From Botryllus schlosseri (taxonomy: Eukaryota), in NCBI GenBank assembly GCA_051294905.1, contig CM119381.1:19220001-19284000 (forward strand): a stretch of 64,000 nucleotides of DNA, written 5' to 3'. How positions within the stretch are numbered: position 1 is the first letter of the stretch; each line of letters starts with the position of its first letter. The notes below the pieces were generated by a model. That model made no database searches. It was not told the DNA's origin and saw only the letters and a list, made by a program, of their open reading frames with translations. This document shows, piece after piece, positions 5,697-64,000 of this stretch. The position numbers and the translations under genes are program-made.

Positions 5697-8116
5697 TCAT
5701 ACAGCATGACTCCCCCAAAAAAGCAGTAACTTGTGAACTGCAGCGCCATGGAATAGTTCGCCATAACGTCTTGTTTTTAACGAGTATTCCCCCTTAAATT
5801 GATGCAGAGTATGGTTCCATATTTTCCATTTGCGATTCATTTTCCACACAACATGAGGTTGCGCACCATCCCAGGGGTAATACATAACTTCGTATTTTCT
5901 TCCAGATGGTGTTAAGACGGGCTTTACGTTCACGGTCGAATTTCCCAGCTTCTCTCTGAGTATACCTGTCATTGCATTTAATATATTTGAGGATAAGGAG
6001 ATGTTTCAATCTTTGTGCAATCAGCATTTCAGACGTCACCATGGCATACCCACTTAAAAGAGAACGATGACCTACCTGTTATCAAAACATCTTCTAAAGG
6101 AAAATGTGTGATGTTTGTTATTTCAGAAGCACATAAGATGGATCGGACCAAGGTGCCTTTCATTGTGTACATGCCCCCGTGACAAAACGTTGGATAACGC
6201 TGGTGTGAATATTGATCCTCATCAACAAACCTAAAATAACGCGTGTGAAACAATTTTCGAAGATATCAGGAGAATTGATCCTGGGTGGGTACAAACCATT
6301 TGTTTTTCTTTTGTCTAACCGGTGTGCCTTTAGAATTGAAATTAAATCCGCAAAATATATTTTCGTTTGCTTCCGACGGAAGCAACTGATCGAAAAACGC
6401 GTGTATGTTTGAAATCTTCATCATACAGTCGTTATCGGTGAACGTGTAAAAGGTTTCGGTGTTAGTATGCTGAATTATCCACAAGAGCGAATGAATAACC
6501 TGTATAGAGAGGTTAAAAGAGCATTTCAATATTACGAGAGACAGTCCACACCAAAGGGCACAATGACCATTGGGATGAGACCCCCACTCACACACGAATA
6601 GCCATATAGGGTTGCATAAAAAAATTTAATTTAAGCAAATATGTCTTTTATTGTGTTTTTTTAAAAGTCATAGTGGATTGACATCGACAATTAAAAATAT
6701 AAGGTGAATATTGCTCTTTTAACGAGATATCTACGTACTATAGCTGTTGAATCGACTATTTTTTGGGTTCCGACAATCCCATATCGTACACGTCGGCTTT
6801 TACATATATACACCATGTTTTTGGAAAGTATATACACAATTATGGCATAATTATACAGCTTGAAAGAAATGGTTTTTTGAAAAGACCCTTGCGTAAAACA
6901 TTGTTTAAAACATGTTTCAAGCAAAGTGTTTTAAACAACCATTTCTTTTAAATGCAACCCTACAAACAGAAGCTATCAAACAATAAGTTCATGGTTGATT
7001 ACAATGAAAATGAATATATATTATGCCGTAGCCTAGGGATCAGTTCATAATCTTTGGTATCTGTATAGTATATTACGAAACATTCGCCTTTGAAACCGCG
7101 CATAATCCTATAGGCAATATGAGAGAGATATACCACGAACCTTGTTCGGTAAATTTTTGTATGTGTCTGAGACAGGACATTGCAAAATATCGCCGAACAC
7201 AGCATTCTCCTCTTGTAGTGCCTTTTGCCACAGCTCAGAGTGGTTGGATGCGTTCGGTAATCCGATTAAAAATACCACAGAAAACAATTTTCCTTTGAAT
7301 GAAGCAACCGATCCCCACGTCGAACGAACTGTATTTCGAAACACGTAGTGGTGAGGAGCGGACTTGACGACGAACACCATCCAAGCTGTTAACAGAATGC
7401 TGGTGCAAACTTGGTTGCAAGAAATTTCACAAAAGTATCCATTTATGCAACTTTGACTTTATGTTGTTCAACCTCAATATATCTATAAAGGCGATGGAGT
7501 TGATCACGACCGAAAGTTGTTTTGGGGTCAAATATTTTTGAATGGCACGGAATGTTACACTTTGGAGAGTAAATACAATTTCACATTCTTTCGAAAATGC
7601 CTGGTGACGTGAACAGTTTATTTTATTAAAACAAACCAGTGATATGTATAATTATAATTGTTTATGTATAACCAATCAATGCATTACCTACAAAAACCCA
7701 CATTTTCCTACTTCTTCCAATGATCGCGGAGTCAATAGGTCTCCTTCTCCGCACATTGCGTATGATGACGGCGGCCACGTTATTCGGGCGTATTTCAAGG
7801 GTAATAGACTGCCTTTATCCGATGAAACATTCGCAACATCTCTGTGAGTGCACTCAACAGTTCCAATCTCCCAGCGGTACAATTTCGCTTGCGACCGAAC
7901 GCCCGACTCCGGAGAATACGTTTCATATGACAGTGTCGTGGATGTACTGACATCAGATATCGGCAAAGTTTGAAGTGATCGGTTTCGAATGAAGAAGGCA
8001 TTTCGATGTGAAATCTTCAATGCTTGTAATAGGTGGATGCAGACATTGCACAATAACGCAAGAAAAGCTGTGGCGATTACAAATTTCATATTCTTAAACG
8101 AAATGCATAATTTCAT
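5697..8116 (-). CDS. GT31-family beta-1,3-galactosyltransferase-like protein, about 5 coding exons (~8116-7700, ~7388-7141, ~6503-6297, 6230-6076, 5965-5697)
   Basis: N-terminal TM (MKLCISFKNMKFVIATAFLALLCNVC) and GT31 motifs VFVVKSAP..RNTVRSTWG, VVFLIG, ENAVFGDILQ..VSDTYKNLPNK, DxD (FTDND), PVRQKKNKWFV, YPTFCHGG, EDVLITGILR. GT-AG introns join in frame. The first donor is the least certain boundary. Confidence 0.85.
6607..6962. mobile_element. hAT-type MITE (TIR [T/C]AGGGTTGCAT) in a B3GALT intron; sister of 29815-30168
   Basis: TAGGGTTGCAT...ATGCAACCCTA; internal blocks shared with 29815-30168 (e.g. CATGTTTTTGGAAAGTAT); TSD not preserved. Confidence 0.75.
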
Positions 8117-14830: not shown

Positions 14831-17800
14831 ATGCGGATAAGGTACCTGTTGCTATGCTCCGTTTATACCGGAGGAGTATTACTTCTCATTTTTGCAAGCT
14901 CCACAAGTGCAAGTGAGTTGTTTACCCGGCAAAATAGTGTAGCATATTCACTAAATGAAATATACGGTACACACTATTGTGATTTATGGGTTTATTGATC
15001 TTATTGCATTTTAGTGCAGTCATTCGTTTCCTACGACTGGGATTCGATAATGAACCCAGGAAAAAACTCCTTATTCATTTCGGTGGATGACGGGGCTCCT
15101 TGCGTAGCTCACTGCAATGTCCGCGATGATAGTCTGGCTGCGGTTGCGGTTACTTCATTTCAACAGCACATAAACGAGTCTCGGAAGATTTACGAGAAGT
15201 TGATAGACTTTCGTGCCGCCGGGAGATACGTTGTGAAATGCAATTTTATACCTCAAGGTAACGTTGACAAATATTCAAATATCGACAGATGATAAATGTT
15301 TTATATATGAACGCATTTCTAGTGTATTCCATAAGAGAAATATAAGAATACAGAGCGTGTTAATTATTCTTTGAATACGGGCAGATACATCGGTTGGAGC
15401 TTCAGAAATAGAGCTAAAGTTATTTATCAGCGAATCGGTGCATCCTGTTATTGGACAGACAGACAGCCCAAGGAAGATCGAAGAGGCGTTAAATGTTGAC
15501 ATCAGCTTCGGGTCATGGACAGACATAAGGCTAGTTACTGCGTGGATATATTTTGAGCCAAGTTCGTCGGAAAACGAATATGTTTTGGGGAAACCAGAAT
15601 ATATCGAACGGAAGGACAGTTCCAGCAATTTGTATGTGGGGCATGAATACAGCAAACCTGGTATATGGAAAATTCGAGCTGACATAGTTGTCAATCTTCG
15701 AAATGCATTGAAATACGTTCAGTTGCTATTGACTGCGGTGATCGCAGACGACATAGAATACGTTCGACTCGACACAAAATGCATCTCCCTGTGCAATGGA
15801 CAGAGATCGTACAGTATTTCGAAAAAAGATTATGAAGACGTGACAATGATGTTTCCTTACCAGGCAAGAATTGAGGCCAGTGTGTCGTCTAAAAGTATCA
15901 TAACAGAATGGGAGTGGTTTTGGGGGAGTGCCTCGTTCTCGCGACGGCACCCAGTGGAGATACGTATCGCTAATTACATGCCGATGTCCGTTACGGTTCG
16001 CAACGCGTTTTCTCAAATGACTTTTTCATTTGAATTGGAGTACAAGATTGTCATAGAAGACTCGGTTATCGCCTTTAATGATAGTACCGACGAAAAGGGA
16101 CCGGTGAACATCGCAGTTATTTTCACCAGTCCCCAAGATGCATATAGAATCACGAATGCGAAGCCGGTGGAGGTGGCCGTGCAAATAAAAAGCAGTAAAT
16201 CCTGGCCTATTCCTAAGGCGACTGCTGTCCCTCCAGCACAACAAAAGTGCTATGAAAATTCGACCGCATCCTTCAGTAGCTTTCTGGATTCATGGGATGG
16301 TTTATCAGGAGGAAATTACCGACAAGATATATTTACTTACTGCGTCAGAAATCTGCAATATTTTCCCGAATATCACGGGCCTTATGATGTGCTATCAATA
16401 GCACAAAATCGGGTTAGAGCAACAGCGAACTGCAAAAGGAGAGAGTTATGCATTTGACTGATCATGATGTGTTTTAGGTTTACAAACGCGAAGCCGAGTA
16501 TTCATTCTGCGTACGTAGATCACCAACTCTCTGTGCAAAGTCGTTCGAGGCAAAAATCAGACATGGCGGTCTCGGAACGACCACGACCGCTTATCAAAAC
16601 ATTGTATTATTTGGAGAATATTTAGCAGGGCATTGCGATTCAGCATACGACCACGAGCTCTTTTATAATTGGACACTAACGCAAAAAGGTGGATACATGC
16701 TACTGCACCAAGCCATCGAAAGTAGAAAATAACATTGAATTAATTTCAGACACAAGTACGCTGCTTTTGGTGGGATACGAAAACGAATTTTTCATCTCAG
16801 GGAAGTACTTGACTGTCAGCGAGTTCATTGTTACTCTGCAATTATCTAAAAGAGGATTATGTGGCGAACATGACGGGACTGCTTACGATACAAGGGAAAT
16901 AAAGACATATCAAGATATTGAACATGCGGTGACGATAAGTGGCGGTCAGGAATTAATTTTGTATGTGGATAATGCAACAAAATTACTGTTTGAAGTGGAA
17001 AATGCAGCAGCATACCACGCCGTCCAATATAAATGGTACTGCTGTAAAATGGAACAGGAGAAACAATTTGAAGCTAGCTATTACTCGGGAGATCTTGATA
17101 ATACAGGTAATCAGATAGAACCCAGAATGATTCCATTTTAAGCCAAATCTTTACCTTCTTGGATATGCTAAGGGGGCTGTCTCGGAAGTGGATTCCATCT
17201 TTCCGACGGAGTACGAAATATTTCTAGAACTGGATCCAGAATTTCAATTGATGCTGGAATGTTTCGAGATATTCCAGGAAAATTCAAAATTCGTGTATCG
17301 TTACGAAGTAAGAGCGTCTACGACGATCAGTATATTGAGCTTCGTGAATCAACTTCAGACCTCACAGACATCCTTGGTCAGATGCGTCAGTCGTAACACC
17401 AATTGTTTAATCCAGCATGGCATGTTTCTATTACAGGTTCTTATAACGGCTCAATATATCATCCTCGTTTGAGTATAGAATGCATTTTCAATTGCGAAAA
17501 GTATTTGGACACCTCGTCGACGCTAACTCTTAAAGGCCGATGCGACTTATGTGCAACTGATTCATCAGATCTTGAAACAATATATCAATGGAGTTTGCAT
17601 GGACCAGCTCACTCCAATCTATACTCATTGATCACGGACAGTTGGAGAGAATATTCTTTCACTAAACTAGACGAATTTCCCCAAGAAATAAGACTACGCT
17701 CGGCTGCATTCACTCGGACAGGAGCATATAAAATTCAGCTGACAATAGCAATCAGAAACGAGTCAACCTTTTCGCAATATCAACCTATCGGTTCCGCGTA

Positions 17801-20800
17801 CTATTACGTCATAGTGGCGCCGGACGTCTCGTCGACATTTTGTTATATACGTCCGTCATCTGGATATGCTGCAGCTACTAATTTTACATTGGGATGCTCA
17901 TCAAGTTTCAGTAAAGGGAGTAATGTTTATGAATTTCGCTATTCTGACTGTCTTTTGTGTGAGAATGAAGATTCGTATGAACTATTTTACAGAGGATATT
18001 CCGCGGATGTCTCAGGTAAGGAGATGGATTACAGTGACTCTTTCCGTGAGATTTATGATTTCGATGTTTTCCGCAGGAATATTGCTACCAAAAGGTGAAC
18101 GAAGATTCGGATACAGATTGATTATAAAAATAACAAAAACAAACATTGCTGATGGAAAATCTAGTAGCTCATATATATTCGTCCGAGTAAAGTCACCAAC
18201 CGTACAAAATGCCTTTGAAATTTTAAAAACATCATTGCAGGAAGGTTAGTTGCCTATGTGGGTGTACGAATGTACGATTAAGCTGTTCCTCTGGTCATTG
18301 CTCATTATTGTGACATTATGACGCTCTTCATTGAAATTCATCTGTATAGATAGAATATATTGTTCTTTTGTTCTTTGTTAATGCCCATCGCTCATCGCTG
18401 CTTACATAACACCATGTAACAAAAATTTAGTTGAGCCGATTTTTTGAGATTTCCCATACCCTATTCCTTCGTAAAACATGTTTCTGGCATTTACTTGCCT
18501 CAGGTGTCGTTTAAAAATGTCATTTTAAGCTTTATAAACTTCCCGTGTCATGTTTTTCAAGCTCCTTTATTGAATTTCGACGTCACATTGATCCATCATC
18601 CAATTCATAATAGTTGGTTGTTATAGTAGCAATCATCTTCTCAGTCTCAGTAAGTCAGTATTGGTTATAGGCTACAGCAAGCAATCGCAAATTTCTTTTC
18701 GTTTTGTTCTGTTATTGCACTGATTGTGGATCTAGTGAGTATAACCTCACCATTAATGTCAACACACAAATGTAATCTGCCTGCTGGCTGATTTTGATAT
18801 CTATGTGGACTGTATATCAGTTTGAAACAAGTTAAGTACAAAATATAGATAGAAGTAAGGTTTTTTATACTTATTAACTTTACTTTGGCCTGAAGATTGG
18901 AGATAAAGATGAAAACTGGGCATTTCATGTAATCTGCGAAACAGGCGGATGCAATATAAATGGCTGGCTAAGGGGAAATCAGCATTCAATGTCATTTGCT
19001 ATTAAAAGAATCTGAAGGGAAATTAGAAACCTGACAGATGACATTACAAGGTTCAGAATAACTAAAAAATGACTTGACATTTGATATCCTTCTATGCCAT
19101 CTTCTCTTAAGCACCTGCTCCTTATTGCAGTAAGTTTTCACTGCCCAAACTATCATCATCATCATCATCATCATTGGTTTATTAGCAATTTTATCAGTTC
19201 AATACACCACAAAATGCGATACAATGAAAAGACAGGAAGATGTCGAAGCGACAAGGAGTAGTCTATGGAATCTGACACCCACCTTGGCCTAGGCGATGTA
19301 AAGAGGAGGCATGCACACTGAATGAAAGTAAAGAAGATAGTATGGAAAAAGATGGTTCGTGGTACAGAACTTGAATATAGCTTTCAATACAACATCCATT
19401 GTAGCAGTATATTTATTAAACTCGAAGACTTTTCGGGTGCCTCTTTTCAAGAGTTATCGGCACACTAAAGGGATTTAAACAGATTTAAAAGCAAAACCAA
19501 AAAGGCAAAGTATGACGCAACAATCAAAATCACAGACCATGAAATTCGCATTGTATCAATGGCAACAATAACAAACTACGAAGAAAGATTTCCTCTATAA
19601 CCTACAAATTTCTCATTAGTGCGTGTTGTTCCGTGCGTGTAACTGTTTATTTACAAATTGTGCTGCTACTATAGTACCGTATGTCCGTATACTTCGTAGT
19701 TTGTTATTGTTGCCATTGATACAATGCGAATTTCATGGTCTGTGATTTTGATTGTTGCGTCATACTTTGCCTTTTTGGTTTTGCTTTTAAATCTGTTTAA
19801 ATCCCTTTAGTGTGCCGATAACTCTTGAAAAGAGGCACCCGAAAAGTCTTCGAGTTTAATAAATATACTGCTACAATGGATGTTGTATTGAAAGCTATAT
19901 AGAAAAAGAATGCGACAAGAAATAGGGCGGCATGTCATGGGAAGCGAGATCGATAGGTCAGTCGTGGTCCGGTAATCTTGAGGATGGACTGTATTTATTT
20001 AGTAGTAATTGCTTGTATTTCCACTTGAATGTGGACATGCTCGTCGACTGTCGGATGGCAGGCGGGATACTGTTCCACACATCAGACCTTAGGCATTAGA
20101 CCTCAGACATTAGACCAAAAAGCTCCAGAAGACTCGACAGCAGGGCTTAGAGTTAAGAAAATGACTCCGATTACGACTTCAACATCTCCCATGTAGATAT
20201 AAATCCAAAACCACACATTCTGAACCAACACGAACTTTGTGATTTAGTCGGGACTCACTAAATCAAATGAGTAAATTCTGACTCTAAGGTTGAAACTAGG
20301 GAACGATGCCCTTCGTCGAGAAAAGGACATGAACGATTTTTACGGTATTTTTCTGTGGCAGGTTCTCCTTGCATATGCGGGAATGTTGGCAATCTTGTAA
20401 ATCACTTGAAAATAAGATGACTGCGAGAGAAGCAGGAGCATTCAAGGCATTTCGAGATGTAGTTGAAAACTTTCTTGTAAATAAACGAAGCAATGAATAT
20501 AAACCTCTGGTAAACAATATGATCGAGATCTATGAAAAAATGAAGTGGGGCATGTCCTTAAAAACGCATTACCTGCACTTTCACCTTGATTTTATTAGTT
20601 CAAATATGGTTGATGTAAGCGTGGAACATATAGTGACGTGTTTCAGCCGGATATGCGTGTTCTGGAAAGACGATACTAAAAGTGGTGGAATTGCGTATTT
20701 GCGGTCAATAATTCCATCAGATTTCTCAGTCTATAGACCCAAATCATGCAAACAAATCCACTTCGGAAATTTTTTGAAGTGTTTCCATCCTTTTATGGTA

Positions 20801-23800
20801 GCCACTATTTGTGCATATTCCTTCGTTTTGTTAGTGCCTTTGACTGTTTGTACGCCCAATGAGGAATTATGCGCATTATTACAGGGCAATTTCGAGTAAA
20901 ACGAGAAATCACAAAAAGTGACATTTCCCAAAGACTAGGGACACGTCAGAAGAAATTTTTGTATTTTAGTGATTGGTTTGGAATAGCGAAACACAATACA
21001 TAAAAAATTTTAGCCAACTAAAACTTTTGGAAAATTTTGTTACATGGAGTTAATGCTTATATTTTGTATTTTAGTGATTGGTTTGGAATAGCAAAACACA
21101 ATTCATAAAAAATTTTAGCCAACTAAAACTTTTGCAAAATTTTGTTACATGGTGTTAATGCTTATACTTGATTGTTAACACATGAAACATTTTGGATTTA
21201 AACGTAGTTATAATCGATTAGATATCTTACATTCAATATACTAAAGGCCGTTTATTGCAAGGGTCGACAGTTACGCAGGGTATGATGCAGAAGGACGCCG
21301 TCAAGTCTGTCGCATTTGTCTCGTCATTACTCTCCGTGGCGGAAATCGTAAAAGGTTGTATCCTGAAATTTATTGCGCACCTTTGGTAATTTGAAAATCA
21401 GCATTTTTCTTGACAGATGAAGAAGTACGTCTCGAAATGGCCAACAGAGTATTGGAAGACTTGCAGAGGGTGAATCCGTCATCACTGGACACTATGAAGC
21501 ATTACACGTCAATGCTGAAAAAGCTTGCAATTTTTATCTCGGGACATAATAGTTCAAAATACGACGGTGTTGTAAAAGTCGCCGAAACAGTTTCAATCCT
21601 GGCCGAACAAATCAGCTACCTACTACAAACGAGTGAAGAATTGACGCAAGCACCATTCATGAATATGTTTGGAGTCATCGGCATTTGTATGAGGGATGCG
21701 AGAAATATGTCTAGCTCGAAGCTGAAGACTACGGTCAAATTATCCAAAGACCTGGCAAAACTAATTGTAGTAAACAAGAAACCCTTGGGTGAATATCCTA
21801 CAGTTCTGCAAAATGATAATCTTCTTGTTTCTATATCAAACTCGAGGTTTCAGAACTACCCTTCAAGAGTTAATTTACTGCAGACCGGTTTCGCAATGAC
21901 TGGTTTGCTTCAGCAAAATGTACCTCGCATAATACAAGCCGGCTTGGCGAAGTTTTCTTTCAACCCGATGGCTCAACAGGCAACAGACAATACACCAGTA
22001 GTTGGATTGGTGCTAGCTGCACAAAATGCAACTGGCGATACATATAGGCCAGCTAAGCAACGAGGAAGATCCACGCCACAGTTTATTGAAACGAGCTCTG
22101 TATTGCGCGGCACAATTCTCCATCTTCTTCTTCCAACACCAACATTGGAAAGGTCGATCGAAAAGACTATCCGTCTTCCTCAGCCTTGCTTGACATCAAA
22201 CGCCAGCACAGCGTCAACACTATCGCGCTCATCGACCGAACCCTGTGGATATGCACTGATCACCCTTTCATTCGATGGTTTTACAAACTCGGAAGGTAAA
22301 CATGACAGTGATTTTGCAATTAATATGTTGGATTACCCCTGTTTTGACATTTCAGAAGAGTCGAATCGTCTAACTGCAAGTGAAAGTTACGCTAACTTCC
22401 GACCCAGCAGGCCGTGTCGCATACCAACATCGCCTTGTATTGAGGTGCTAATGTTGCGCAGAATAGATGATCCCGCAACAATCCATAAAACCTTGGATAT
22501 TGAAGTGGAGGATTGCTCACCATTAGAAACTAATGATTGTGTACGGACATATGCTGTCTTAGAAACTGCCGTTCTACCAGCACATACTCGTGACACTCAA
22601 CTGCCTGATGAGTTTACACCCGATCCTTGGAGTGTATATTTGAACGACGAAGTGATCAACACGATCAATTCGGACGGTGTCACTTTAGTCGTTGTTATCA
22701 AACACTTACAGCGGGATATATATTCGCTGACTGAAGACTCACTGGATTCACATTTGAACGTAAGTGAATATCATATTTGCTACACGTATAGTAGCGTCTC
22801 GATGGATAAACATGTTGGATGGATTGGATGGTGGTGGTGGATGATGGGCCTAGATTCACGACAGGTTGTGATTAATGATGACCCTCATATCAAGTCCAGA
22901 TGTCTGGATATAAAAGGCTTATTTGCTGATATACACACCGCAAATATTACTCATCTCGCCACAAGCACGATTTTGAGAATACACGATCCTTGCTATACAT
23001 TTCAGATCACCGTAGACGTCTTTAGTGCTTCATGCCTGGTATGGAATGGGACTTTGGGGTGGCATGACCATTTTTGTGAGAGAGGTCGTCCGACAATTGG
23101 AGGAAGCATACATTGCGAGTGCAACGTAGATCAACTCAATTTTGATTCCCCAGATCAAGAGCCGGTAAGTGTAAGTTGGAGTGTAGTGCGGACGTACTAC
23201 GCCGGACACGTATGGAATTTATCCAAAGAAAGAACTGCAGACGGCTTCCATAATGGAGTCCAGTGCTTACGTGTTCGTTGGGAATCGCGTGTCTTTTCAG
23301 AACATTCTCATGGAAAAGTGCAGAATAGTGGTAGTGATAGTAGATATGATGTCAGATTTATGTTTAGTCTGAATAGCGAGTTGTTGGTTCAAAAGCACCT
23401 AAGCAAGTTGAATGTGATAGCCTGATCTGATGGTGCTGTATAGGTTTCTCAGATGAGCCTGAATTTGGGCGCCAAAAGTTGGGCCGATTTATAGATTGTA
23501 CGCCGTGCCCGAATTGTATTTGAGAGCAGATTTGGGAATGTTCCTAGCATTGAGAATATCAGGCATGAGGTAATACCAAATTATAGACTTGGATGTAAAA
23601 GTCAGGTGCAATGCATGATGTTAAAATGAGAATATGAAATCTACCCACAAAAGCTTATTGCGATGGGGGAGCTAAAAGTATTTGGAGAGTATTTACGATC
23701 TTGTGCGACTGATAAAATGAATAACTGTGCCATAGATCATAATCATAACCATAAATGCCCGCAAGTGAGGTTAGCAAAAATCCACGACCACATTGTTGCA

Positions 23801-26800
23801 ATGAGTGAAATCGTCCGGCATTGAATCATAGCCAACTGATTTACAAAATAACGAAGTCACAACGCTATTCCATCTCATAGAAATGACAAAACGCTTCTAC
23901 AAGATACACCCCAGTCCGGAACCTCCGAACTGCAATTAAATCGCAGCCGGAAAAGAATAGTAACTTCGCTTTGGTGTGACGTCACAATGATTTCATGTTG
24001 TGCTTTCACTTGGCTCGGCATCAAAGTCCCTTTTCCACACTCACAGTGATTGACCAATTTTTTGATTGAAAGCTAAAGCAAGACTTAAACGTCTGACAAC
24101 CCAAGCCTCCCTCATATAATATAATGCATTTTAATTATTACCATGCTGCGTTTTTGGTAATGTATGAAGTTCTTACTATTTCCAACGGTATGGTTACCTA
24201 GGTATCGTATATACGGTAGTATAGACACTATTATATTTGCTTAAAATGGCGACATGATGCACAAAATGTTCAAGCCATGATAATATGAATAAAAGATTAG
24301 GATGACTAATCTGTTTGATGTCAACTTTGACAAAAAGGATTATGTGCATGTACATACTAAATAATTAGCTTCCTATTCTTTTGAAGAACATGATATTTTT
24401 CACTGCGAATCTGGTAATCGCGCCAAATCGCATTGCCTTCGAAGATATCGTCTCCATATTGCTGCGGATCCGATCCCATTACTATGTGCTAGCGGTGGTG
24501 TTCCTCTTTTGGTTGATATTCATTTTATCGTTCCTCTGGGCTCGAAGGTGAGATACATGTCTAATGAGCGGGCGATGTGTCTTTAAAATACTTGGTTCAG
24601 GGACGATTCGATCGATGCATCTATGAGAGAGATTCAGATTCCTGTAGACAGCAACCTTTCTTACAACCATCTTTACGAGGTTGTGATATCGACGGCCGTG
24701 TTCAGAGCGGCGGGAACTTCTGCAAAAGTACAGATTATGCTGGAAGGTATCATGTTACGCTACTTCGTTACGACTGGGCATTATTGCATTATCTATCTAT
24801 GCTGCTGATCGTGACGCCTATATCAGGAGAGTACGGAACTACCACGGATATCAATACCATCAGCACTGAAAATCATTCCACCCTGCAAAGATCAGGAAAG
24901 GATTCGTTTCTTATCGCTGCTCCGCAATCCCTTGGCCAAGTTGTGAAGATACACGTTTGGCACGACAATGGCGGTACGGTCTTAATGATATAGTGTGGTG
25001 GAGATACCTCTACCAGGCGTTGTATTTTCTTTCGAAACAGGCGAATATCCTTCTTGGCATTTGAACAGAGTGGCTGTATTTGACTTGCAAAACAAAGACC
25101 AACCGCCATCGTATTTTCTTGTCAACTCCTGGCTATCGCAAGACATCTATCCATTTCGGTGCCATTTGACAGCAAATGTATCGAAAGACTCGGAACTTTA
25201 TTCTTTTCGCACGATGTGGGGAACGTACGCATTCAGCGCTATGAGTGAGCGGGATGTTTGGCTGACAACGTTCTTCAAGTACATCACTAATTACAAATAT
25301 TGCACATTGATATCAAGAGCTTTTATTTAAATAGACCTCGAGGAAGTCAGTTCACGAGAATGAGAAGATTGGCTTGCCTGTCGACGGCGTTTTTCGGGAC
25401 AATGTTGGTTACAAATATGTTCATACAAGCGGGATCGCAAAATTATTATTTCTTCAACCTTGGCTTCGCGGAAATCGATCTCTCACCTATCATCATCGCT
25501 ATCGAAAGTATCGTCCTCACTGCACCGGTTCATCTTCTCCTTGTCTACGTATTCAAGTACGCCTAACTACCGCGGGCTTTCTGGCCAAGTATTCTAGTCT
25601 TGATAGGCAATGACAGACATAGATCGATCGATATGCCTGCATCTATGTTTTGCAGTCGGATTGAAACGGAAGAAGAGATAGAAATAAACAACGCCCTCGA
25701 AATGTACAACAATGGACAGCAGTTTACTGAGGAGACACGCGAGGCTTCGACTACCCCATATATTCAGAGGCCTCGCAAATATGAAAACGGCACATATTCA
25801 AGAGTGCGGGAATGCTACGTATTAACAAAAGAAGTGCACTCGTTGAGGAGATTAAATGAAGGTTGGCATATCAAATCGATGGCCTTTGCCTTTACCTCCC
25901 AAATATAAATTTCATCGTATAGATTCCTTATTTCGAAATGAGGTGAATTGAATATAAATTATTGTCTTGCAAGCATCCTTAGTGACCAATATATTACCGC
26001 AGCATTCACCATCACATTCGTGTCGTCCTGCATGATTTACGAATTTTGAGCCTACGTTGATCGTTTTTCCCATTGTCCCAATACGTTCAATAATTTACGA
26101 TTTTACAACGTTGATTGTTTTGTCTTATTGTACCGGAATGTCATTTCTTGCAGTCTCATTTATGTGTGCCATGATTGGTCATAGTACATTGCTGTGCCTG
26201 ATTTTTTGTTTAATAAACAACAACAGGAACCTTCGCAGTGCCCATAGAGAAAGTTTGTTCTGCAGGTAGCAACGACGGTTATGATAGTTCAGACGACGAC
26301 TTCGATATTCACGAAACATTGAGCGACTGCCTGGACATCAAAAGAATCGCAGAAGAAATCGCAGCAAAATGTCCGGCGAAGTCCGCTTCTCAAGAACAAA
26401 GAAAAGTCAGAGTGAGAATAGTCGAAGAAGAAATTTCCCAAAGCACAACATCGTTGTCCGAATTGATCGGCGTTGAAAAACACGAGGTTCACGACGGACA
26501 AGCCGTTTGGTACAAACGATTTCGCGCCAAAAGAATTCTTCGCGCTTTCAGAAGAAGAAACAGCAACACTGGCTCGTCCGGCTTAGTACAATCGATCAAC
26601 GACAACCTGTTTCCTCGAGAGAGTCCGTACGAAAATACTCTGAACGCCTTGGAAAATTTTGCTTCCCTGGTCAATACTATCGTATTCTTACCACGAACCA
26701 AAGGCGCGATTCCGGAATGGGTCGGCGGAATCGTGTGGTGTTTGACTTGGATCTATGTTATTGTATGTTCGATCATCAGTGTGCTCTATGGGCTATCGTT

Positions 26801-28904
26801 CGAACGGTCAAAGTTTCTCATGTGGCTCACAACTTTTTTGCTTTCGATAGTACAGAGCATACTGATCGCGGCTCCGTTGGAACGTTCCCTATTGGCCCTG
26901 TTGGCGGCCATGATAGGAAAGAAAAGCATACACATCGATCAATGGGCGGCATACACCGGCAAAGCACAACGAATACACGCCGTTGTGAAATGGCGACAAA
27001 TGCAACGCGAAGAAAGACTGCACGGCGATGCGTTCGCCCGAAGTGAATTGACGAGAGAATCTTCTGAAAAACTGAAAGGCGACACCTCGTCATACCCACC
27101 TCCGTTTCTAAGCATGATAAAACGAGGGAAACGTGCCTTAGCTGTGCGTCAAGTGAAGCGTTACTGGTACGAAACTTTCGTCTGGATCGTAATCGCGACA
27201 TTTGTGTCCATTCTCATAGCTTACCAGCGGAACCCCCAACTCCTAAGAATAAATCAAGGATTGGCGAAGAAGCTGCAATATGATTTGGGACAAGTATCCA
27301 CAAGAGATGATGTCTATGATTTCTTACAACACAACTTAATTCCAGTATTATTCAAAGAGGACGAAATATCGATGTTTCTACAATTCAAACTGCTTGGACC
27401 CATTCACATGCGTCAGTTGCGCTTTACGGGCTTCCGAGACTGTACCTGCGACAGTCGAATAGACGTGAGACAATGCAAGTGCCTGCCGCTGTATGGTCAC
27501 GCAATTTCCACCGAGTCTTACGACAGTATCAGCTACACAGACAGTTGGAGTAATCCCATTACGAACAATACCTCAACCATAGATTTTCATTCTCCTTTCA
27601 TATATCAGCAATGCGCGGAAAGTGAAACTGATTATCCTTTCGGTAGTAACCTGTACCGATCCTTTTACCTGTGTGGAGGATACACAGTGGATTTGGGATT
27701 CCAAGCAAAGCAGGCTTCCGCAATAATCAACTCATTAAAATATTCTGGTTGGATCGACCGGTTTTCCGCTGCGTTGATCGTGGAGTTTGCAATTCTCGAC
27801 ACGCCTAGTGGATACGCCACTCCATTCCTCTACGTGATGGAGTTCTTGCCGACAGGCGGGATACACGTGTTTCAGTACTCCACCAGCTACCGCCAATTCT
27901 ACATTTATGAAATGAAGGACCTGGCCGTGATCGGTCTTCAAATTCTGCACGTAGCCATCTCCATATATCTCGTATACTCGACGTTAACTGAATACTCCGA
28001 TGTTAAATGGAATCCTAAAGCGGTCGTAGGGATTTTCATGAATCCGTGGCATCTCATTCAAATTATTGTGGCCGCGATCACGTTCATAGCGTACGGCTAC
28101 TACCTGAAACATATAACAGTGGCGGAAACGTCAAGCGGGACGTTCAAAGCAGATCCGAGCAAGTTCGTCTCATTCCTGAACGCGGCTTACCATTTTGTCA
28201 CGTACACGAACTTGATCAGCGTGGGCGCGTTTCTGTGTTACGTCCGCCTGTTGAAGATCCTGCGTGGTAGCGAGTCCGTTGTAGTCATGCTTAATACGAT
28301 ATCTGTGGCCAGAGACGGCGTGGGAAACGTGGCGTTCCTTATCTCCGCTGTAACCGTAGGATTTGCACTCACCGGAATCGCTTCCTTGGCTTCTACCAGA
28401 CTCAATTTCCGACACTTCCCGACTGCATTTACAACACTAACTAGTGTCGGCGCGGGAATGGACGTGCCTCACCCGGAACACGGAGTTACGGAAGAAATTC
28501 TATGGAGCATTTACTTCCTGCTGTTCGCTATCTTCGTGCTGACTTTTTATGCGAACCTCTACGCGACAGTCATATCGGACGCGTTGTTTTTCACGAAAAA
28601 CGAAAACTCGAAAGAGACCTCATACCAAGTGGAGACGTTGGCGCTGCATTGGGTGTACGAAAAATTGGTGTCGCTGTTTGGTTTCAAGTCGAGGGCGTTC
28701 TCCGGTAAATCGATCAAGCTCAGGCCTCCGCCTGGGTCTGTGCTCAACAGAGATGACATCGCGAAGGAAATGAGATTATCGCTGACGGTGGACCCGGACG
28801 AAGGGCCAGCACAGAAAAGATTGCTGACTAGACGAGGGAGCACTAAATACAGAAAACTGACGAATCTGTCGCCCGAGAATGACGGAAACCCTCGCGTCAC
28901 ATAA
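14831..28904 (+). CDS. Polycystin-1/PKDREJ-like 11-TM protein, paralog A (signal peptide, PKD-like repeats, REJ, GAIN/GPS-like, TM1, PLAT, TOP, channel domain); roughly 2,700 aa by my estimate
   Basis: Signal peptide MRIRYLLLCSVYTGGVLLLIFASSTSA; PKD-like FRAAGRYVVKC and HEYSKPGIWKI; REJ features (CIFNC, CYIRPSSG, LLPKG); GPS-like CLVW...W...C...CEC; PLAT YEVVISTAVFRAAGTSAKV...WHDNG; FTRMRRLAC; TOP GGYTVDLG...WIDRFSAALIVEF; six C-terminal TM segments in the 26270-28904 exon. The exons I traced join in frame through GT-AG introns. Confidence 0.88.
19375..19900. mobile_element. Foldback/MITE: perfect 209-bp inverted repeat with 108-bp spacer, in an intron of paralog A
   Basis: 19375-19583 is the exact reverse complement of 19692-19900; ends read TA|TAGCTTTC...GAAAGCTA|TA. 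Confidence 0.9.
20190..20700 (+). pseudogene. Internally deleted DNA-transposase relic, CMC/Chapaev3-like
   Basis: N-terminal KPHILNQHELCDLV..LTKSNE*ILTLRLK is joined to the C-terminal AFKAFRDVVENFLVNKRSNEYKPLVNNMIEIYEKMKWGMSLKTHYLHFHLDFISSNMVDVSVEH block; stops and frameshifts present. Superfamily assignment is from recalled motifs. Confidence 0.65.
20956..21165. repeat. ~105-bp tandem duplication with a few substitutions
   Basis: ATTTTGTATTTTAGTGATTGGTTTGGAATAG...TTAATGCTTAT occurs twice (~20956 and 21061). Confidence 0.9.
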
Positions 28905-34400: not shown

Positions 34401-37400
34401 TTACGCCAGGGCCGTTAAATCCGGAAATAATGGGGGGATCAGAATCGGTTATTTATATAATACCGAAATCTATACTCACTCTTGTTCGAGCGGACAGCGA
34501 ACATCCAGAGATGAAGGAAGTAAGGTGGTCCTGCCAACGAAGGATAGGTGGAACAGGACGCCAGGTACAAAGCGCGAGATCAAGTAACGTATTTCCCGTG
34601 ATCAAAATATACTCATTAGCAAATCCACCACTGCGTTTCTTTGCACAGGTAACATGGGATGCTTCCGAAGTGGATTGGACATTGATTTTGCTATATATAA
34701 TGACAGCGAAATAAACATACCTCTGGAATCGCTTTCTCGAATACCCGACACTGTTGCATTTACCCTTACGTATATTGGAATCGACGAGCAGAAGTATTCC
34801 ACCGAACAGATATTGTATTTAAGAGAGTCTTCCCATACAAAATTGGAATTATTAGGTACTGTTTTTATGCAGCCTCATCAAAATCTAAGGATTATATTGT
34901 AAATACATTTCTCATAGAATCTCTTCAGTATAAATCGCTCCAGCCGCGCGTCCTCGTAATCTGCATATCAAATTGTGGGTCACCTTCGGCCGTTTCAAAC
35001 TTCATTCGCCTTCGAGCTGACTGCGAACCGTGCCGTATCGCAAACAGCACGCAAATTCAATTGCAGTATCGGTGGAACGTGTTTCGCTTAGAACAAGGCA
35101 TACAATATGATTTGCCGGGGCACCTATCGTCTCTAGTATTGCCATCAAAGCAGGGATATCCCGACTTTCGAATGATGCCCGACATTCTGAAAAAGGCTGG
35201 GCAATACAGAATACTTGCGAAAATGGAGGCTGTGCGTGCAGGGAGTGAAAGAATTGAACTTGGACGGAGTTATTACGATATTAAAATCCCCGACGCGCCG
35301 GTTCCACCGTCGTGCTTTATACGTCCCTCGCAAGGAATAGCAATGGTCACGAAATTCAAATTAGTGTGCGTCGAAAATGACGCAACACTGCCGAACATGT
35401 ATGAACTGTATTACTCAGTCTGTCATGATTGCGAGCAAGACACAAAACGATATATGCTATTCAACAGAGGATATGAAAGTGTCTACAGAGGTAAGATGAC
35501 TCTCGACGTAGTGGAGATGCATACGCCATAAATACCGTTCTTTCGTCTCAGATCTTATGTTTCCGGTAGGAGATCCAGATTTCGGCTTTACGCTCAGCAT
35601 AAAAGTCACAGTTCGGTATACGCACCGCATGCAAAACGATGTATTTCTGGTCGTTGCTGTGAAACCGCCGGGTAGCAGTGAGACCGAAGATATACTCACG
35701 AAATTGATATCTCAAGGTAAAACAATCTCGGGTTAAACTGCAGATTAGCGCATCAAAATGCGTATCTACAGTAGGGCTCTTCAAAAATGACTTCTTTTTG
35801 TCAAATCGTTAGGTTACTCATACTGGCTACTCATACGCCCCTTTCCACTAATAAAAAATGTATTTTCAACGAGAATAATAGTTTCCGTGCTTTTACCCAG
35901 CGTCGAAGCCTTGAAGGGGCATGAAATAGATATGGTGGGAAAATACCTAACTATTTCTATGTGGTATTAATTATTATTATTGAACTACCATGATTTTCTT
36001 CGGGGGTCACATAAAACGTACACATTTGAATTTTTCACACCATCAATACTCCTATGGCGTCATAATAAGTGATACTAGAATACCCGACTTGAAGCCTAAT
36101 ACGCAATTCGGAATCGAGTCACACATATACTTGATTTTCCCGGGCCAACTACTCGTCTGTGCTGTTGAAAGAGCTAACTATACCTGCAAGTCGTTGTAGG
36201 TAGCTCTGGTGGCTATTACGGACGCCGTTACAACGATTTCAAATTTTGTCGATGGGCCGAATAACGAAGTACCCATCATTGGCTTCATTCAATATAACGA
36301 GGCCTATTCCTTAATATATATGTATACAGGAAATGGAATATCGAGAAATGATCCCACTGGATTCGTCAGGACCGCAACCACAGCTTTATCGTTGACAGAC
36401 ACGGTTGCAGGTATATTGTCATGTCTCGTATCCGTGCGCCGTATATTGGAAGAGCTCATGTTTTAGATGACGAACTGAAACTAAAAACCGTGGAATCGAT
36501 TTTGCAAAAAATAAGGACAGTGGACCAATCGTCGCCAAACGGAATCCGTTCAACATCCCAAGTCTTGACTAAATCCATGGGCGTTCTCGACAGCTCATCA
36601 GTTTCGGACGCTGTCATTATCAGCAACCTGGGTCTGGTAGAGGATACCGTGTCCAGTCAAATAAGTCATATACTGAGTAAAAATACTAGCCGCGGCACTG
36701 ACGACAGCGCTGCCCCAGACGTTGTTGGAACGATTGTGGAAGGAATCCGTCTCGCTACCTCAGTAAAATACAGCAACGTCAGTATATTGACTGGTCGTTT
36801 CGAGTCCAGCTTGGAGTCGGCAATAATGGGCTTTTCAGCGAATAAAATGTTAGGGGAGAAAGCGACGGAAATTCGCTCTGACCGATTTCAACTTAATGTC
36901 GCACTGCAAGAAGTAGAATTCACAGAAACAATTGTGAGACAACAGACAGGACTACTGCTTGGACGTGGCGCGAAAGTATCGGGGAGATACAAAATAAATT
37001 CCGGCGTCATGACGTTCTTTTTCAACCCTTCCAAAAGAGCCGAAAATAAGGAGGATGTTAACATCGTTGTGGATGTAGTTCTTAATAGTACTGCAGAATC
37101 GGGGGATAATCTGCCTGTCGAAAGAGTCGACATATTATTGCCTATTTCCGCCGATGCTAACCTCCAAATGAAACCCGTTTCTTTGCCTCCACCGTGCGGC
37201 GAAACAACCCAATCGTACAGCACACTGTGCGGCGCAATCAAGGCAGACATCCAAATTAGACTGCCAGCGAGCGATCATGAAAAGTCTACATTATCTGGCG
37301 GCGTTTACGTGATCTTGACACCTAAATTTGCATGTCGCCTTCCGCGGCAACCTTGCATTAATGCCACCTTCCAAGTAGCTCAACCGACAGCGGATGAATC

Positions 37401-40400
37401 TTGTAACCTGAATGGTTCTAATTGCGGACATGGCCACCGAATTTTAGCCCGAGTATCCTTTCCAATCGTACTCAAAGAGCCAATTGCCGACGAATTTCGT
37501 CATGATCCGTGGGCCTTAAAAGCTGATGAGCAACTCGCCAGAGTGTTATCAAAGAAGGATTCGCGTTTGACAGTGATTCTCGAATACCTGCAGACATACT
37601 TATCTAGCGACGACGACTTCCAATTGCAAGATGTAAGTCCATGTAATTAATTTGTACTAGGTTTAAATAGCCTATGTCACAGTGGCTAATGAGGGTCCCT
37701 CGCAATTGGGACAGTGAGCAGCAGGCACGATTCTTCGTGAATTTAGCGGCCTGGTAATGTATGGGGCAGCGATAAATCTTTTGAAACAGATGAGGTAAAT
37801 AGATCATAAAACTTATGCTAGTCGCTATAATGTCCTGGCGGAATGAGTGTAACCGTACCGAGTGCTCAAATTCATAGACCGACACATTTATTTCCTCAGG
37901 TTCGTATTGCAATCAGACGCGTTACATGCCTGCAGTGGAATAAGCAGGATTCAACGTGGTCAAGTGACGTCTGTCGAACCCGAGACATTGTCGTAGGAAA
38001 TAAAATCCATTGCTCTTGCACCTTAAGCAAGGCGACGCCAAGAAATTCTGCTGGTGGAGGAAAGAATAAAGTGGGGTAATTGCATCGACGGGTATTGAAT
38101 ACATATCAAAGGTTACACACTCACTTCAGGGCTCGACGAGATTCGCTTCTTCGGTAATCATCGTCCCCAATCAGATAGTCGTGGGGGATATTGCTTCGAT
38201 TATAAGCAGGATGCAGACTCGTTTTTACGTGATTACACTCATGACAAGCGTTTGCGTCGCCTTTATAGCGGGATATGTGATTACCAATCGGTACAAATGA
38301 TTCGCCCGTGACAGGCGATAATGTGATGTATTCCTATGTTATTAAAATAATTGGCTGTTGAACTGCAGGAAGGATCAAGAACAAAAGGGATCCCTAGATA
38401 TCGTCATCCCGCCAGGAAACAGCCCGCATAACGACTATTTATACGAAGTAGTGGTTATAACAGCGGCGTTGCGCGGTGCAGGGACGTCTGCTAAGGTCAC
38501 TATGATTCTGGAAGGTGAGCACGATACGTCAGTCAACTCAATTGTCCGGCATCTCTTTTTCACAATTGAACTCTTTTCAACAGGCGAGAATGGATCAAGG
38601 AGTGACCCCCAGATTATAAGTAATTCGGACCATTCTACTCTTCAGAGAGCTGGGCGGGATTCTTTCCTTGTTCCAACATCGGGATCCCTTGGTCAAGTTG
38701 ATACCATTCATCTCAGCCACGACAATACCGGTAAGCCAATAACAGATGGCAATATATCACTCAATCAATGCAAAGTGTAATTCATTTCTTAAAGGAAATG
38801 ACCCGGCATGGCATGTCAACGGTATAGTAGTATTTGATCTTCATGATGAATCCAGAAAGCCTTCATACTTCGTCATCAACTCTTGGATTTCATTTGACAT
38901 CTACCCGTATCGCTGTAGCATGGTTGCGAAGCGATCGACCGCCGAAGAAATTACATCTTTCGCAGTTTCTTGGAGGCTGCATGCCACTGACTTTTTGAAT
39001 ACTCGAGATGCGTGGTGGACATTCTACTTCAAGTACGCCTATATGTTTCAAAGGTCTTGGCGGTACAGCACTCTAGATAATGATATTGAAATTGTGATTT
39101 AGAGCGCGCCGGAGTGTATTCTCGTACCGGCGACGACTCACCTGTCTGGCCTGTGCGTTCTTCGGGAGTATGCTTGTAACTAACATGTTTATTGAAGCCG
39201 AATCCCAATATTACGTCTTCAAATTGGGTTACGTCGACATTGATCTCTCCCCTCTCATCATCGCAATAGAGAGTACACTCATCACGTTACCTATTGGATT
39301 CATACACCGGCGGGTATTCAAGTACACAACTACTCCGCTGTGTGGTCGTGTCCGATCGTTATGACTGTTTACGTATATGTTTCAGCGGGATCGCGAAGAA
39401 GGGTGAGGCGGAAGTCGACCGTCTTATTTCCTTGGCCAAATCAAGTGTTTCGGACACGGACACGTCCATGAATCAAAGCTCAGATTTCAGGCTTGACGAC
39501 AGGCGCTTCGGAAAGCAAAGTGAGAGTGAAAGAAGTGTTCGCTGTATGAGTTTTTAACAATGCCCGTGTGATCTGATTTAGGTAAATCACTGACGACAAA
39601 AGTCAGCTCAGGCATCGGTAGTGAAGATTTCGATATGACCGACACGCTGCAGGATTTTATCGAGATTAGGAGAATCGCAAAACAGATAATGGATGAATGC
39701 AAACAGATAACGCCGAACGAAATCAATCGACGGAATGTCAAGGTTACTGTCGGTGGTGCCCCGGTGGCAAGCGAACTGGAAGGAATTATCATGCAGGAAT
39801 CTGATCTGAGCCTACAAAGAAGAATTTTCGACAGATTGTTTGTGGATCGCTTCATGACGTTCATCGGAAGAGGTAAAACTGACAAGGAGCAAGAATTTGA
39901 TAATATCTGTAGCGTAGATAAGGATTTCGGGGAAGATTATGCTAATCTGCACGGAATACAGGAAACTAATCTGCTAACAGATGATCGTTCGAAGTTTCTA
40001 CGCGGCATCATCTTTCTACCGAGACAGTTCATGATTCCGGCATGGCTGAACTCGCTGGTGTGGGTCATAACAGTCTTGTATGTTATTCTTTGCTTGGTGC
40101 TTAGTCTCATATACGCTGTCAGTTATGACACGAAGATGTTCCTTTCTTGGCTGACCACATTCGTTATATCGATTGTGCAAAATATCTTCATAGTGTCCCC
40201 CTTGAAGGTATCGATCATCGCAGCAATACGGACGATGTTTACTAGATCAGTAGACCATAATCTCTGGGTCCCACATAGCGGTTCCGTAGCGCGGGCGGAA
40301 GCAGTCATTATGTGGAGATTGCGAAGAACCAGAATAGGCAGGGTGAAAAGAACGAGGTTCCAGTTTAGAAGTCCACAGGATAGAAACACGGTAACTCCGC

Positions 40401-42064
40401 ATGCGTTCGGCGACAGTCTCGCAAACGCCACATCGAAGACAAGGTACGCTATTGCCGTTCGACAAGTTAAAGATTTCTGTCGAGATTCAGTAGGCAGGGT
40501 GCTGCTCGCAGTTTTCGTAAGTCTACTCATATACAACCAATTCGGCCGCGAATTCGAACGGTCGAACACTGTGCTGACAAGAAAGTTGAGTAACAGCGTT
40601 GGGCACATTAAATCGTGCAAGGGAATATTCTCGTTCTTGAACGATGACTTTCTTCCGATCATATTTGAAACCGAGGAGACCGCTGAAATGAGCCCGACGA
40701 TCCCCCTCGGAACCATGCGATTTCGGCAACTGAGAAGAATTCACAGAAAAAGATGCGCCTGTATCCATGACCTGGAGTCGTGTGATTGTATAGGTCAAAG
40801 TTGGTATAACATACCGTATGACGAAGAGAATTATGCTGATAGTTGGATGCCAACCAATGATTCTGCGCAAACGAAAAATCCGTGGGCTTATAACGCTGCA
40901 CTCGGCACCCAGGAGTCGTGGTTACCACCGGGAACATGGTCAGAATTGAGATATCTTGTAACGGGTGGGTATGTCGTCGATAGCGCACACAATATTGAAG
41001 AAATCAGGGCGATACTCCGATCCCAAGAGCACCTCGGTTGGATTGATAATCGTACATTGATTTTCACAGCCGAATTTTCTACGCTGTCGCTGCCCACTGG
41101 ATACGTGACTTCTCATATCACCGTTGTCGAGTGTCTGTCGTCAGGTTCTGCCAGAAGTTCTCATCAATCAAACAGCTATCGTCCAGTATACTTTTATAGT
41201 GGTAAAGATATCATCATCGTATGCCTTCAAGTGTGTCATATCATAATCAATTTCATACAAATTTACGGACTTATTGCCAGGTGCTGGAAAGCGAAATGGC
41301 ACGCACTAGCGGTGCTCGATTTGTGCTGTGATTTGTGGAGTGTACTCGACATAATATCGTTCACCGTCACGATCGTCACGTACATTTTCTACATATACCA
41401 CGTTATGACGTCTGCGGAAGCCAGCACATGGTTGCGTAACAATCCGAGTGGATTTGTATCGTTCTCAAAGCCCGCATACCACAAGATCATGTTCATGAAT
41501 CTGTCAGGTTTATGCGTGTACCTGAACTATTTACGACTACTGAAAATCACGAGAGGAAGTGAAGCCCTGTCTCATATAACGGACTTGATCAAGAAATCAC
41601 GCGCAGGCGTCATCTCCTGCACACTTTCATTCATGACACTCATTACGGTATTTTCAATGACCGGACGGCTTATTACATCCATGATAACCTGGAGCGAGGG
41701 TCACATAGTCACACCTCTGATGGACATCTCGTATCTGGCTGTGTTAGGCAAACTCAAACCTCCGAATCATGCAGTCATAGAAGACATTAGCAGCAGAATC
41801 TACTTTTACGCTGCCGTTATTTGTATTTCCATCCTGCATGCTAATCTGATCGTGGTTGTGCTTCTGAGAACTTTTAAAGCGTCGGAAAAGTTGCGCAGGA
41901 TGAGCGGCGTTTCTCGCAAAGCCGAAACCGTGGCTGTACGGTGGATTTACGAAAACGTTTGCCGGATAATAGGTGTGAAGTCGAAAGCATTCTCCGGGAA
42001 AAGCGTTCGTCTTCGGATTCCTCCGGGTACCATTTTACATCGAAGGCCCTCGCAAAGAAAGTAA
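31496..42064 (+). CDS. Polycystin-1/PKDREJ-like 11-TM protein, paralog B; same architecture and largely the same intron positions and phases as paralog A
   Basis: Aligns to A throughout: YPGHDVLELSISQGLPCVVAC vs NPGKNSLFISVDDGAPCVAHC; CISNC; CFIRPSQG; DEFRHDPW vs DEFTPDPW; CLQW..W...C...CSC; PLAT YEVVVITAALRGAGTSAKV...HDNTG; TOP GGYVVD...WIDNRTLIFTAEF; terminal exon ~39582-42064. Confidence 0.88.
33839..34110. mobile_element. hAT-type MITE (TIR TAGGGTTACCATA) in a paralog B intron
   Basis: TAGGGTTACCATA...TATGGTAGCCCTA; degenerate TSD (ACATAAAG/CATAAGAG). Confidence 0.75.
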
Positions 42065-56303: not shown

Positions 56304-56735
56304 CGGCTCACCTAGAAACCAATTCACCGATGGTAACGAATCCAATAAACATTCACATATTACCAGCTTTACATAGGAGACTACCTATCTGTGCATTACA
56401 TCACGTTGTATGCCTTGTGCTGATAGAAATACCATCGCTGACGATTGATTGAAGCAACAGAACTACACTACGAAGACCGACCCACCTACCAACACCACGT
56501 AATACCTAACAACCTCAATTTCCACTCACCTCTGTGCAAGATGCTTCTACAAATCTCATCAAGCTAATTAATCAAAGTACCAAGAATAAGCCATCATTAA
56601 TATCTTATGTCGTACCTAAATGGCAGATATTTATTCAACCGGCAACAACGGGGACTAGGCACAGTATGGATGATTATCAAGTCATTATAATCTCAATGAT
56701 GATACTGCTTTCATATATTTCGTGATAATTCTTCA

Positions 56736-63561: not shown

Positions 63562-64000
63562 TTAAAAATTAACAGAAATACATTTGATGAAACCATAAAC
63601 TTTCAAACTGCATCTTCAACTTTTAGTACTGGGATAACAAGTGAAACTTCTGAGGAGCAAATGACTAAATTTCGCAAAGCAATGAGAAAGCTAAATTGCA
63701 TAACTTTCAAGACCATAAACGTAATCGGTTTTTAATTTTATAGAAAGGGTTAGTCTCGAAAAAACTTGGATGTAATGCTTGTACAGGTTAAGCTTAAATC
63801 ACCGGATATACTACTGTGCAAGCGTCTTACAGTGTGAACAGAAAACACACAAACAAATGTGTAACCTGATTCATCAATATTCTGCATTGCGTACTCGGAC
63901 TGCCTTCCTAATGTGCAAACAGTATTTGTCAGTGAACCAATACACAGATATCAAGTTCGCGCAGTACGGTAATTGACAAAGCAGCAGTTAAAAATGGTTG

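Follow-up and report, generated by a model that had tools for sequence, protein, structure and literature searches.

Self-cleavage at the GPS is central to the maturation and signaling of polycystin-1 and of the adhesion G protein-coupled receptors (GPCRs). In a canonical GAIN domain, a sharp turn with His-Leu|Thr connects the last two strands and puts the scissile bond under strain. Exceptions are known among the relatives of polycystin-1: a passage of PMC9672506, which cites Butscheid 2006 and Field 2011, describes PKDREJ and PKD1L1 as proteins without HL(T/S) that are not cleaved at the GPS. Among ascidians, the Ciona sperm self-sterility receptors s-Themis-B and s-Themis-B2 have been described as homologues of PKDREJ or PKD1; they combine REJ, GPS and LH2 domains with 11 transmembrane (TM) segments and a PKD channel, and the genes for B and B2 lie in tandem (PMC7018956, PMC9265791). 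Here we analyzed a stretch of 64,000 nucleotides (nt) from the ~496 Mb genome of Botryllus schlosseri (C11:19220001-19284000, henceforth the window; positions count from its first letter unless another locus is named). The window contains two polycystin-1-family genes in tandem on the + strand, gene A at ~15.3-28.9 kb and gene B at ~32.1-42.1 kb, in which extra residues occupy the scissile position of the GPS. We propose that both probably encode PKDREJ-type GAIN domains that are non-autoproteolytic and stay single-chain, the scissile turn having relaxed into a fast-evolving loop once catalysis was gone.

The GPS exon of gene A (23006..23164, + strand) encodes 53 residues with four Cys and two Trp, reaches CEC at 23114-23122 and ends ...HCEC-NVDQLNFDSPDQEP. 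It is followed by a phase-0 intron of 1222 nt (23165..24386), placed just before the residues equivalent to HLT, and by an exon (24387..24547) that reads NMIFFTANLVIAPNRI. This second exon supplies N-M-I-F, the last GAIN strand FTANLVIAPNRI (through 24434) and TM1, and it is homologous to the strand-plus-TM1 segment of Styela, Ciona and gene B. HCEC is continued by N and then by 13 further residues (VDQLNFDSPDQEP, codons 23126..23164), which stand between CEC-N and the residues at the H-L-T-x positions; 18 residues separate the last GPS Cys from the Phe of FTANL. The organization of gene B is the same. Its GPS exon (37900..38070, + strand), again with four Cys and two Trp and with CSC at 38011-38019, ends ...HCSC-TLSKATPRNSAGGGKNK, where T is followed by 16 extra residues (LSKATPRNSAGGGKNK, 38023-38070). 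A predicted phase-0 intron of 59 nt (38071..38129, with GTGGGG...TTCAG ends) sits at the position of the 1222-nt intron of A, and the next exon (38130..38290) begins GSTRFASSVIIVPNQI and encodes G-S-T-R at the H-L-T-x positions, the last GAIN strand FASSVIIVPNQI and TM1, which places 21 residues between the last GPS Cys and the Phe that opens the final β strand. The intron ahead of this GPS exon is homologous to intron 22760-23005 of gene A.

The H-L-T positions are thus occupied by N-M-I in A and by G-S-T in B, and His-Leu-Thr is present in neither. The insert has a net charge of −4 in A (13 residues) and of +4 in B (16 residues), or +5 when GSTR is counted. The GPS scaffold around it is kept in both proteins, including the four disulfide Cys, both Trp, the penultimate strand with CxC at its end and the final strand F-x-x-x-L/V-I-x-PN-x-I. 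A first-pass annotation of this DNA had reported the Cys-to-Phe counts of 18 and 21, the missing His-Leu-Thr with 13-16 extra residues at the scissile position, the retained Cys, Trp, downstream strand and PN-x-I, and the opposite loop charges, acidic in A and basic in B; our translations bear it out on each of these counts.

The Pfam model of the GPS (PF01825, cut-off 22.5 bits) reflects this architecture. The GPS exons alone scored 14.7 bits for A and 18.8 bits for B, and both matches covered only model positions 2-37 of 45, whereas canonical controls scored 37-40 bits and reached position 43. The canonical spacing between Cys and Phe is five residues, as in PKD1L2 of coral (CMC-NHLTS-F) and of amphioxus (CLC-NHLTP-F). 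The B. schlosseri genome itself contains at least 82 canonical GPS matches, nearly all of which reach model position 43-45. Three other polycystin-1-family loci in this genome keep the canonical spacing in a single exon with no intron at the site. These are a canonical paralog with five-residue spacing on C16 at ~5.98 Mb (L005, CLC-DHLTS-F) and two canonical-spacing paralogs, one on C11 at ~27.086 Mb (L001, CYS-DHLTS-F) and one on C15 at ~16.094 Mb (L003, CVC-NKLSP, with K-L-S in place of H-L-T). A and B share with the canonical GPS of PKD1, PKD1L2, suREJ3 and most adhesion GPCRs the GAIN scaffold, the Cys and Trp residues, the last strand and the place before TM1. They differ in that the canonical form, C-x-C-x-H-L-T/S-x-F, has a kinked turn of five residues and is cleaved, whereas A and B have a turn with 13-16 additional residues and have lost the catalytic residues.

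The loop of gene A is present in spliced RNA. A 4062-nt spliced contig from RNA run X1 joins 22295/22356, 22759/23006, 23164/24387 and 24547/24601, all across GT..AG introns, and the resulting model of A is open through GAIN, GPS, TM1 and PLAT. Both ends of the GPS exon are therefore seen in RNA, and the junction 23164/24387 that the first-pass annotation had predicted is confirmed. That annotation had also considered that true splicing might restore HL[T/S]; the X1 contig shows the long form without HLT and includes no micro-exon that would restore it in gene A. The loop as a splice artefact in A was rejected since the contig takes the downstream donor, CCG|GTAAGT at 23164/23165. For gene B, we accept the predicted junction 38070/38130 because the intron of 59 nt has consensus GT..AG ends, no other in-frame GT donor was found after CSC, and the following exon has the length (161 nt) and phases of its counterpart in A.

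The insert is found well beyond these two genes. A whole-library HMMER search with the gene A GAIN exon gave 8 matches. The relatives found were Styela clava XP_039248072 (P0004), which NCBI names 'polycystin family receptor for egg jelly-like', Ciona intestinalis P0006 with its full-length cluster member P0014, P0007, which is a full-length transcript-derived protein of another tunicate, and P0008, which is an exon fragment. In these tunicate relatives, CxC is followed by 20-23 residues and then by F/V-x-x-x-L-[VI]-I-x-PN-x-I. The number of residues from Cys to Phe is 23 in Styela, 22 in P0007 and 20 in Ciona, and 20-23 overall in the four tunicate sequences other than A and B. In tunicates, loops of the A type are acidic or Ser-rich, none has a basic site, and their sequences are not conserved. 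A lizard PKDREJ-like protein among the Styela matches has ~20 extra residues at the same site, and a search from this protein yielded 117 vertebrate PKDREJ proteins (P0010, P0015-P0130) from sharks, rays, a caecilian, a newt, turtles, squamates, birds and marsupials. All 117 have 19-27 residues (mean 23.1) between CxC and Phe. HL(T/S) occurs in 0 of the 117, and none of the 117 has a precomputed Pfam GPS match, which PKD1L2 proteins do carry.

Vertebrate PKDREJ resembles A and B in several further respects. The domain order is the same, the four GPS Cys are kept in the absence of HL(T/S), the spacing of 19-27 residues from CxC to the last strand compares with 18-21 in A and B, the hydrophobic residue at Leu(−1) is kept, Pfam makes no GPS call, and PKDREJ is reported as uncleaved in the passage of PMC9672506 referred to above. 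The loops are different in character, as those of vertebrate PKDREJ are basic and rich in Ser/Thr whereas the A-type tunicate loops are acidic and only that of B is basic; the phase-0 intron at the 3′ end of the loop is a further feature that sets A and B apart. The first-pass annotation had treated the loop as an unrecognized oddity of A and B, which cannot stand given its presence in Styela, Ciona, two more tunicate sequences and 117 of 117 vertebrate PKDREJ proteins. It named PKDREJ as an uncleaved GPS protein but overlooked the same insertion there. Taken across these proteins, the insertion is real, is confined to one branch of the family, and is much older and wider than the A/B pair.

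The structural consequences of the insert were examined by proxy. An AlphaFold model of the turtle PKDREJ GAIN domain (P0040:1131-1538, 60-row alignment) had a mean predicted local distance difference test score (pLDDT) of 84.4 and a predicted template modeling score of 0.83. The sole segment with pLDDT below 50 was 368-382, which is the insert, and it sits between strand 358-364, with CxC (invariant C361 and C363), and strand 386-394. To our knowledge, uncleaved adhesion-GPCR GAIN domains normally keep the canonical loop length and differ by substitution or context rather than by a long insertion in the turn. Such intact, folded GAIN domains were the top matches of the turtle model, with Z scores of 16.4 for BAI2 (8OEK) and 16.0 for BAI3 (4DLO), followed by 15.0 for the latrophilin-1 GAIN domain; unrelated folds scored 7 or less. 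On uncleaved chains the alignment of the model reached residue 395, and on the cleaved latrophilin chain A it stopped at 365, the cut position. A model of the Styela GAIN domain (43-row alignment) was weak, with a pLDDT of 51, and it showed at low confidence the same order of strand (478-483, ending in CQC), loop (pLDDT below 50 at 493-501) and strand (505-514). The Foldseek matches of this model were meaningless because the model is too weak, and a sequence search of the PDB with the gene A GAIN exon returned nothing useful. In most insert-bearing proteins the residue at the Leu(−1) position is hydrophobic, being Met in A and Ciona, Leu in Styela and, for most vertebrates, Ile. This suggests that the loop re-enters the fold at the canonical position.

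The relationships of these proteins were examined with a maximum-likelihood tree of the C-terminal regions. Its 25 rows included two canonical paralogs of this genome as exon-captured sequences, but not the short C11b capture. Word-based searches from Styela P0004 gave 6 and 2 matches and supplied too few PKD1, PKD1L1, PKD1L3 or echinoderm REJ sequences for rooting. It resolved three well-supported groups, namely the tunicate insert-bearing proteins, vertebrate PKDREJ and the canonical proteins. Since the tree is unrooted and has three groups only, this is a three-way split from which a sister pair is not identifiable, and the tree is compatible with a single origin of the insert. BLAST scores of gene A do not discriminate either, as amphioxus PKD1L2 (122 bits) scored no lower than PKDREJ (92 bits). 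A and B were sisters to the exclusion of Styela (support 97/96), and gene B was on a long branch (1.78 as opposed to 0.67 for A). The pair looks like a recent, lineage-specific tandem duplication. If so, the basic loop of B is most simply a derived state that arose by divergence after the duplication, and an ancient acid/base division of labor between the two genes becomes less plausible. We consider it likely that a tunicate polycystin-1-family gene of the PKDREJ kind gave rise to A and B by a lineage-specific duplication in tandem, their kinship with PKDREJ being suggested by shared features.

How such a GAIN domain would behave can be proposed from these features. In place of the turn there would be a hydrophilic, poorly conserved and probably disordered loop, longer by 13 residues in A and by 16 in B. 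Self-cleavage is not expected because the His base is missing from both proteins, the Thr/Ser nucleophile is missing from A, and the strained turn is exchanged for a long loop; without general base, nucleophile (in A) and kink, cleavage through an ester shift would not proceed. We infer that neither A nor B cleaves itself. The protein would then stay as one chain in which the last strand, the equivalent of the tethered agonist, is permanently joined to the ectodomain, and any signaling would be independent of cleavage, a mode reported for mouse PKDREJ as well as for uncleaved adhesion GPCRs. With catalysis gone, nothing would have kept the turn from lengthening and drifting. Such drift would explain why the length and sequence of the loop differ between lineages when the flanking strands persist. 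The loop would have no specific function of its own.

Several observations weigh against this proposal. Gene B retains a Thr at the +1 position. The fold evidence comes from turtle PKDREJ and Styela and not from the GAIN domains of the window itself, and the Styela model is of low confidence. RNA contigs drop rare variants and show the dominant isoform only, so a minor short isoform of A is possible, and the splicing of gene B is predicted from its sequence. Finally, the motif R-x-K/R-R occurs in 31 of the 117 vertebrate loops compared with 6.4 ± 2.4 in shuffled loops, which hints that at least some of the loops are not purely neutral.

This excess bears on the explanation put forward in the first-pass annotation, by which the exposed loop is a regulated substrate and is cut by an outside protease instead of by self-cleavage. 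Candidates would be proprotein convertases or trypsin-like proteases of sperm or egg, and it would take a trigger to separate the ectodomain and expose the last strand. In the turtle model, the insert is predicted to be disordered and exposed exactly where the scissile bond used to be, the vertebrate loops are basic (mean net charge +3.9) and Ser/Thr-rich, many birds, lizards, turtles and sharks have a furin-like R-x-K/R-R or K-R at a comparable site, and the loop of gene B has several Lys/Arg. However, the loops of A and of the A-type tunicate proteins are acidic or neutral and offer no basic site, and the loop sequences are not conserved between species. Relatedness among the bird and reptile sequences inflates the count of R-x-K/R-R, simple dibasic pairs show no enrichment (73 as opposed to 72.9 expected), and PKDREJ is reported uncleaved at the GPS in the cited part of PMC9672506. 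We therefore regard cutting by an outside protease as unlikely. Slightly less likely still is its extension to the whole PKDREJ lineage, in which the self-cleaving turn would have become a protease-cut loop, recognized by proprotein convertases in vertebrates and by trypsin-like sperm or egg-coat proteases in ascidians, with loop charge tuning the protease or partner of each paralog. If it were true, fertilization would include a regulated step in which the ectodomain is released and the tethered last strand exposed. Nothing in our analysis lends support to the hypotheses as the first-pass annotation framed them, whether the loop is cut by an external protease, works as a mechanical or ligand switch, or sets paralog specificity by its charge.

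The possibility of a short isoform of A can be traced to a second donor. An in-frame upstream donor, AAC|GTAGAT at 23125/23126 (window 23123-23133), lies directly after CEC-N and was unused in the X1 contig. Its use would remove the 13 extra codons to give CECN-NMIFF, in which the spacing is the canonical five residues and His and Thr are still absent. The loop of gene A might accordingly be optional, with alternative splicing through this donor toggling between a tight turn and a long loop. Its GT coincides with the first codon after CEC-N and splicing from it would keep the frame, but a Val codon is expected at that spot by chance at a rate of ~1/16. The sole transcript seen uses the downstream consensus donor GTAAGT, the upstream donor is without the G at +5, gene B has no equivalent donor, and the short form would be no better equipped for catalysis. 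These considerations make an optional loop very improbable. Equally improbable is that one or both genes, most likely B, are decaying copies whose odd GPS reflects degeneration, for in spite of the long branch of B, the low A/B identity (~23-29%) and the fact that gene B is known from sequence alone, every examined exon of A and B is an open frame with splice sites and exon phases preserved, gene A is transcribed and correctly spliced, and the same type of GPS is found in intact orthologs of tunicates and vertebrates.

The non-autoproteolytic GAIN domains proposed for A and B are part of polycystin-1-family proteins. Both genes have the domain order of REJ, GAIN/GPS, TM1, PLAT and ten more TM segments with the channel half, and the top protein matches of the window are ascidian (Styela clava and Ciona intestinalis). 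The REJ domain (Pfam PF02010) was found at 17397-18095 in A (E = 2e-11) and at 34704-35528 in B (E = 3e-9). Ahead of the GPS exon of A on the + strand are two exons of the GAIN region, both in the X1 contig: 21415..22295, which has an open frame and encodes the helical subdomain and the start of the β subdomain, and 22356..22759, which ends in the donor AAC|GTAAGT. The first of these aligns with gene B exon 36352-37647 and with residues 1043-1487 of Styela P0004. PLAT/LH2 starts directly after TM1, and in gene B its exon (38370..38777, + strand) matched Pfam with 30 bits (cut-off 23). The homologous exons of gene A show the same motif (YEVVISTAVFRAAGTSAKV), and a 48-residue piece of the PLAT of A on its own had no Pfam match. 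The large 3′ exons, 26217..28901 in A and 39572..42061 in B (both + strand), encode the polycystin domain (PF20519, E = 2e-20 and 1e-13, respectively) and the PKD channel (PF08016, E = 4e-13 and 8e-12, respectively). The identity between A and B is ~23% in the GAIN region and ~29% in the C-terminal half.

Compared by description only, the Ciona s-Themis-B/B2 receptors are similar to A and B in family, domain set and tandem arrangement. They differ in their hallmark, a fibrinogen-like v-Themis gene that is encoded on the opposite strand within the first intron and for which no counterpart was found in the window: tblastn of the window with two fibrinogen domains of this genome gave nothing below E = 4. 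The fibrinogen family is large in this genome, with 871 candidates in a Pfam scan, of which 150 were scored.

The introns of gene A around the GPS have some features of their own. Those at 22296-22355 (60 nt) and 22760-23005 (246 nt) have lengths divisible by three and contain no stops, and the frame is open from 21395 to 23164; retention of these introns would therefore not break the protein. A contig from RNA run X2, which may contain DNA, runs unspliced over the 60-nt intron. The middle of the 1222-nt intron (23388-24114) is covered by contigs of X1, X2 and X3 at a depth of up to 11.7, and this coverage could be due to pre-mRNA, DNA carry-over or a separate transcript. A transposon in this intron was rejected, as it is mostly single-copy and not a high-copy repeat; what five other contigs share with it is only ~58 nt (~24097-24155), with 80-86% identity. 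In Ciona intestinalis, the truncated isoform P0006 diverges from P0014 after ...GILTSV, four residues before the Phe. A and B have their phase-0 intron at this very point, which suggests that ascidians have the intron position in common. Elsewhere in the window, translations read by eye indicate a β-1,3-galactosyltransferase-like frame upstream of gene A (7100-7460, − strand) and, at 47890-50400 (+ strand) and 56700-63600 (− strand), a DEAD-box helicase-like gene (GSGKT and DEAD-type motifs) and a V-ATPase a-subunit-like gene.

It was already known that PKDREJ has neither HL(T/S) nor GPS cleavage, and A and B join this group as new tunicate members. The insert as such was described in none of the open papers covered by our search. 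The advance is modest since the insert is evident in any PKDREJ alignment or model. The PKDREJ exception goes beyond substitutions and involves a disordered insert of ~13-22 residues at the scissile turn. This insert spans sharks to marsupials and at least five tunicate sequences, and other polycystin-1 genes of the same tunicate genome stay canonical. Because the Pfam GPS model misses such proteins, the insert is a simple sequence marker for this type of receptor. It also provides a natural set of non-cleavable GAIN domains to compare with cleavable ones, and a concrete loop to consider in fertilization receptors.

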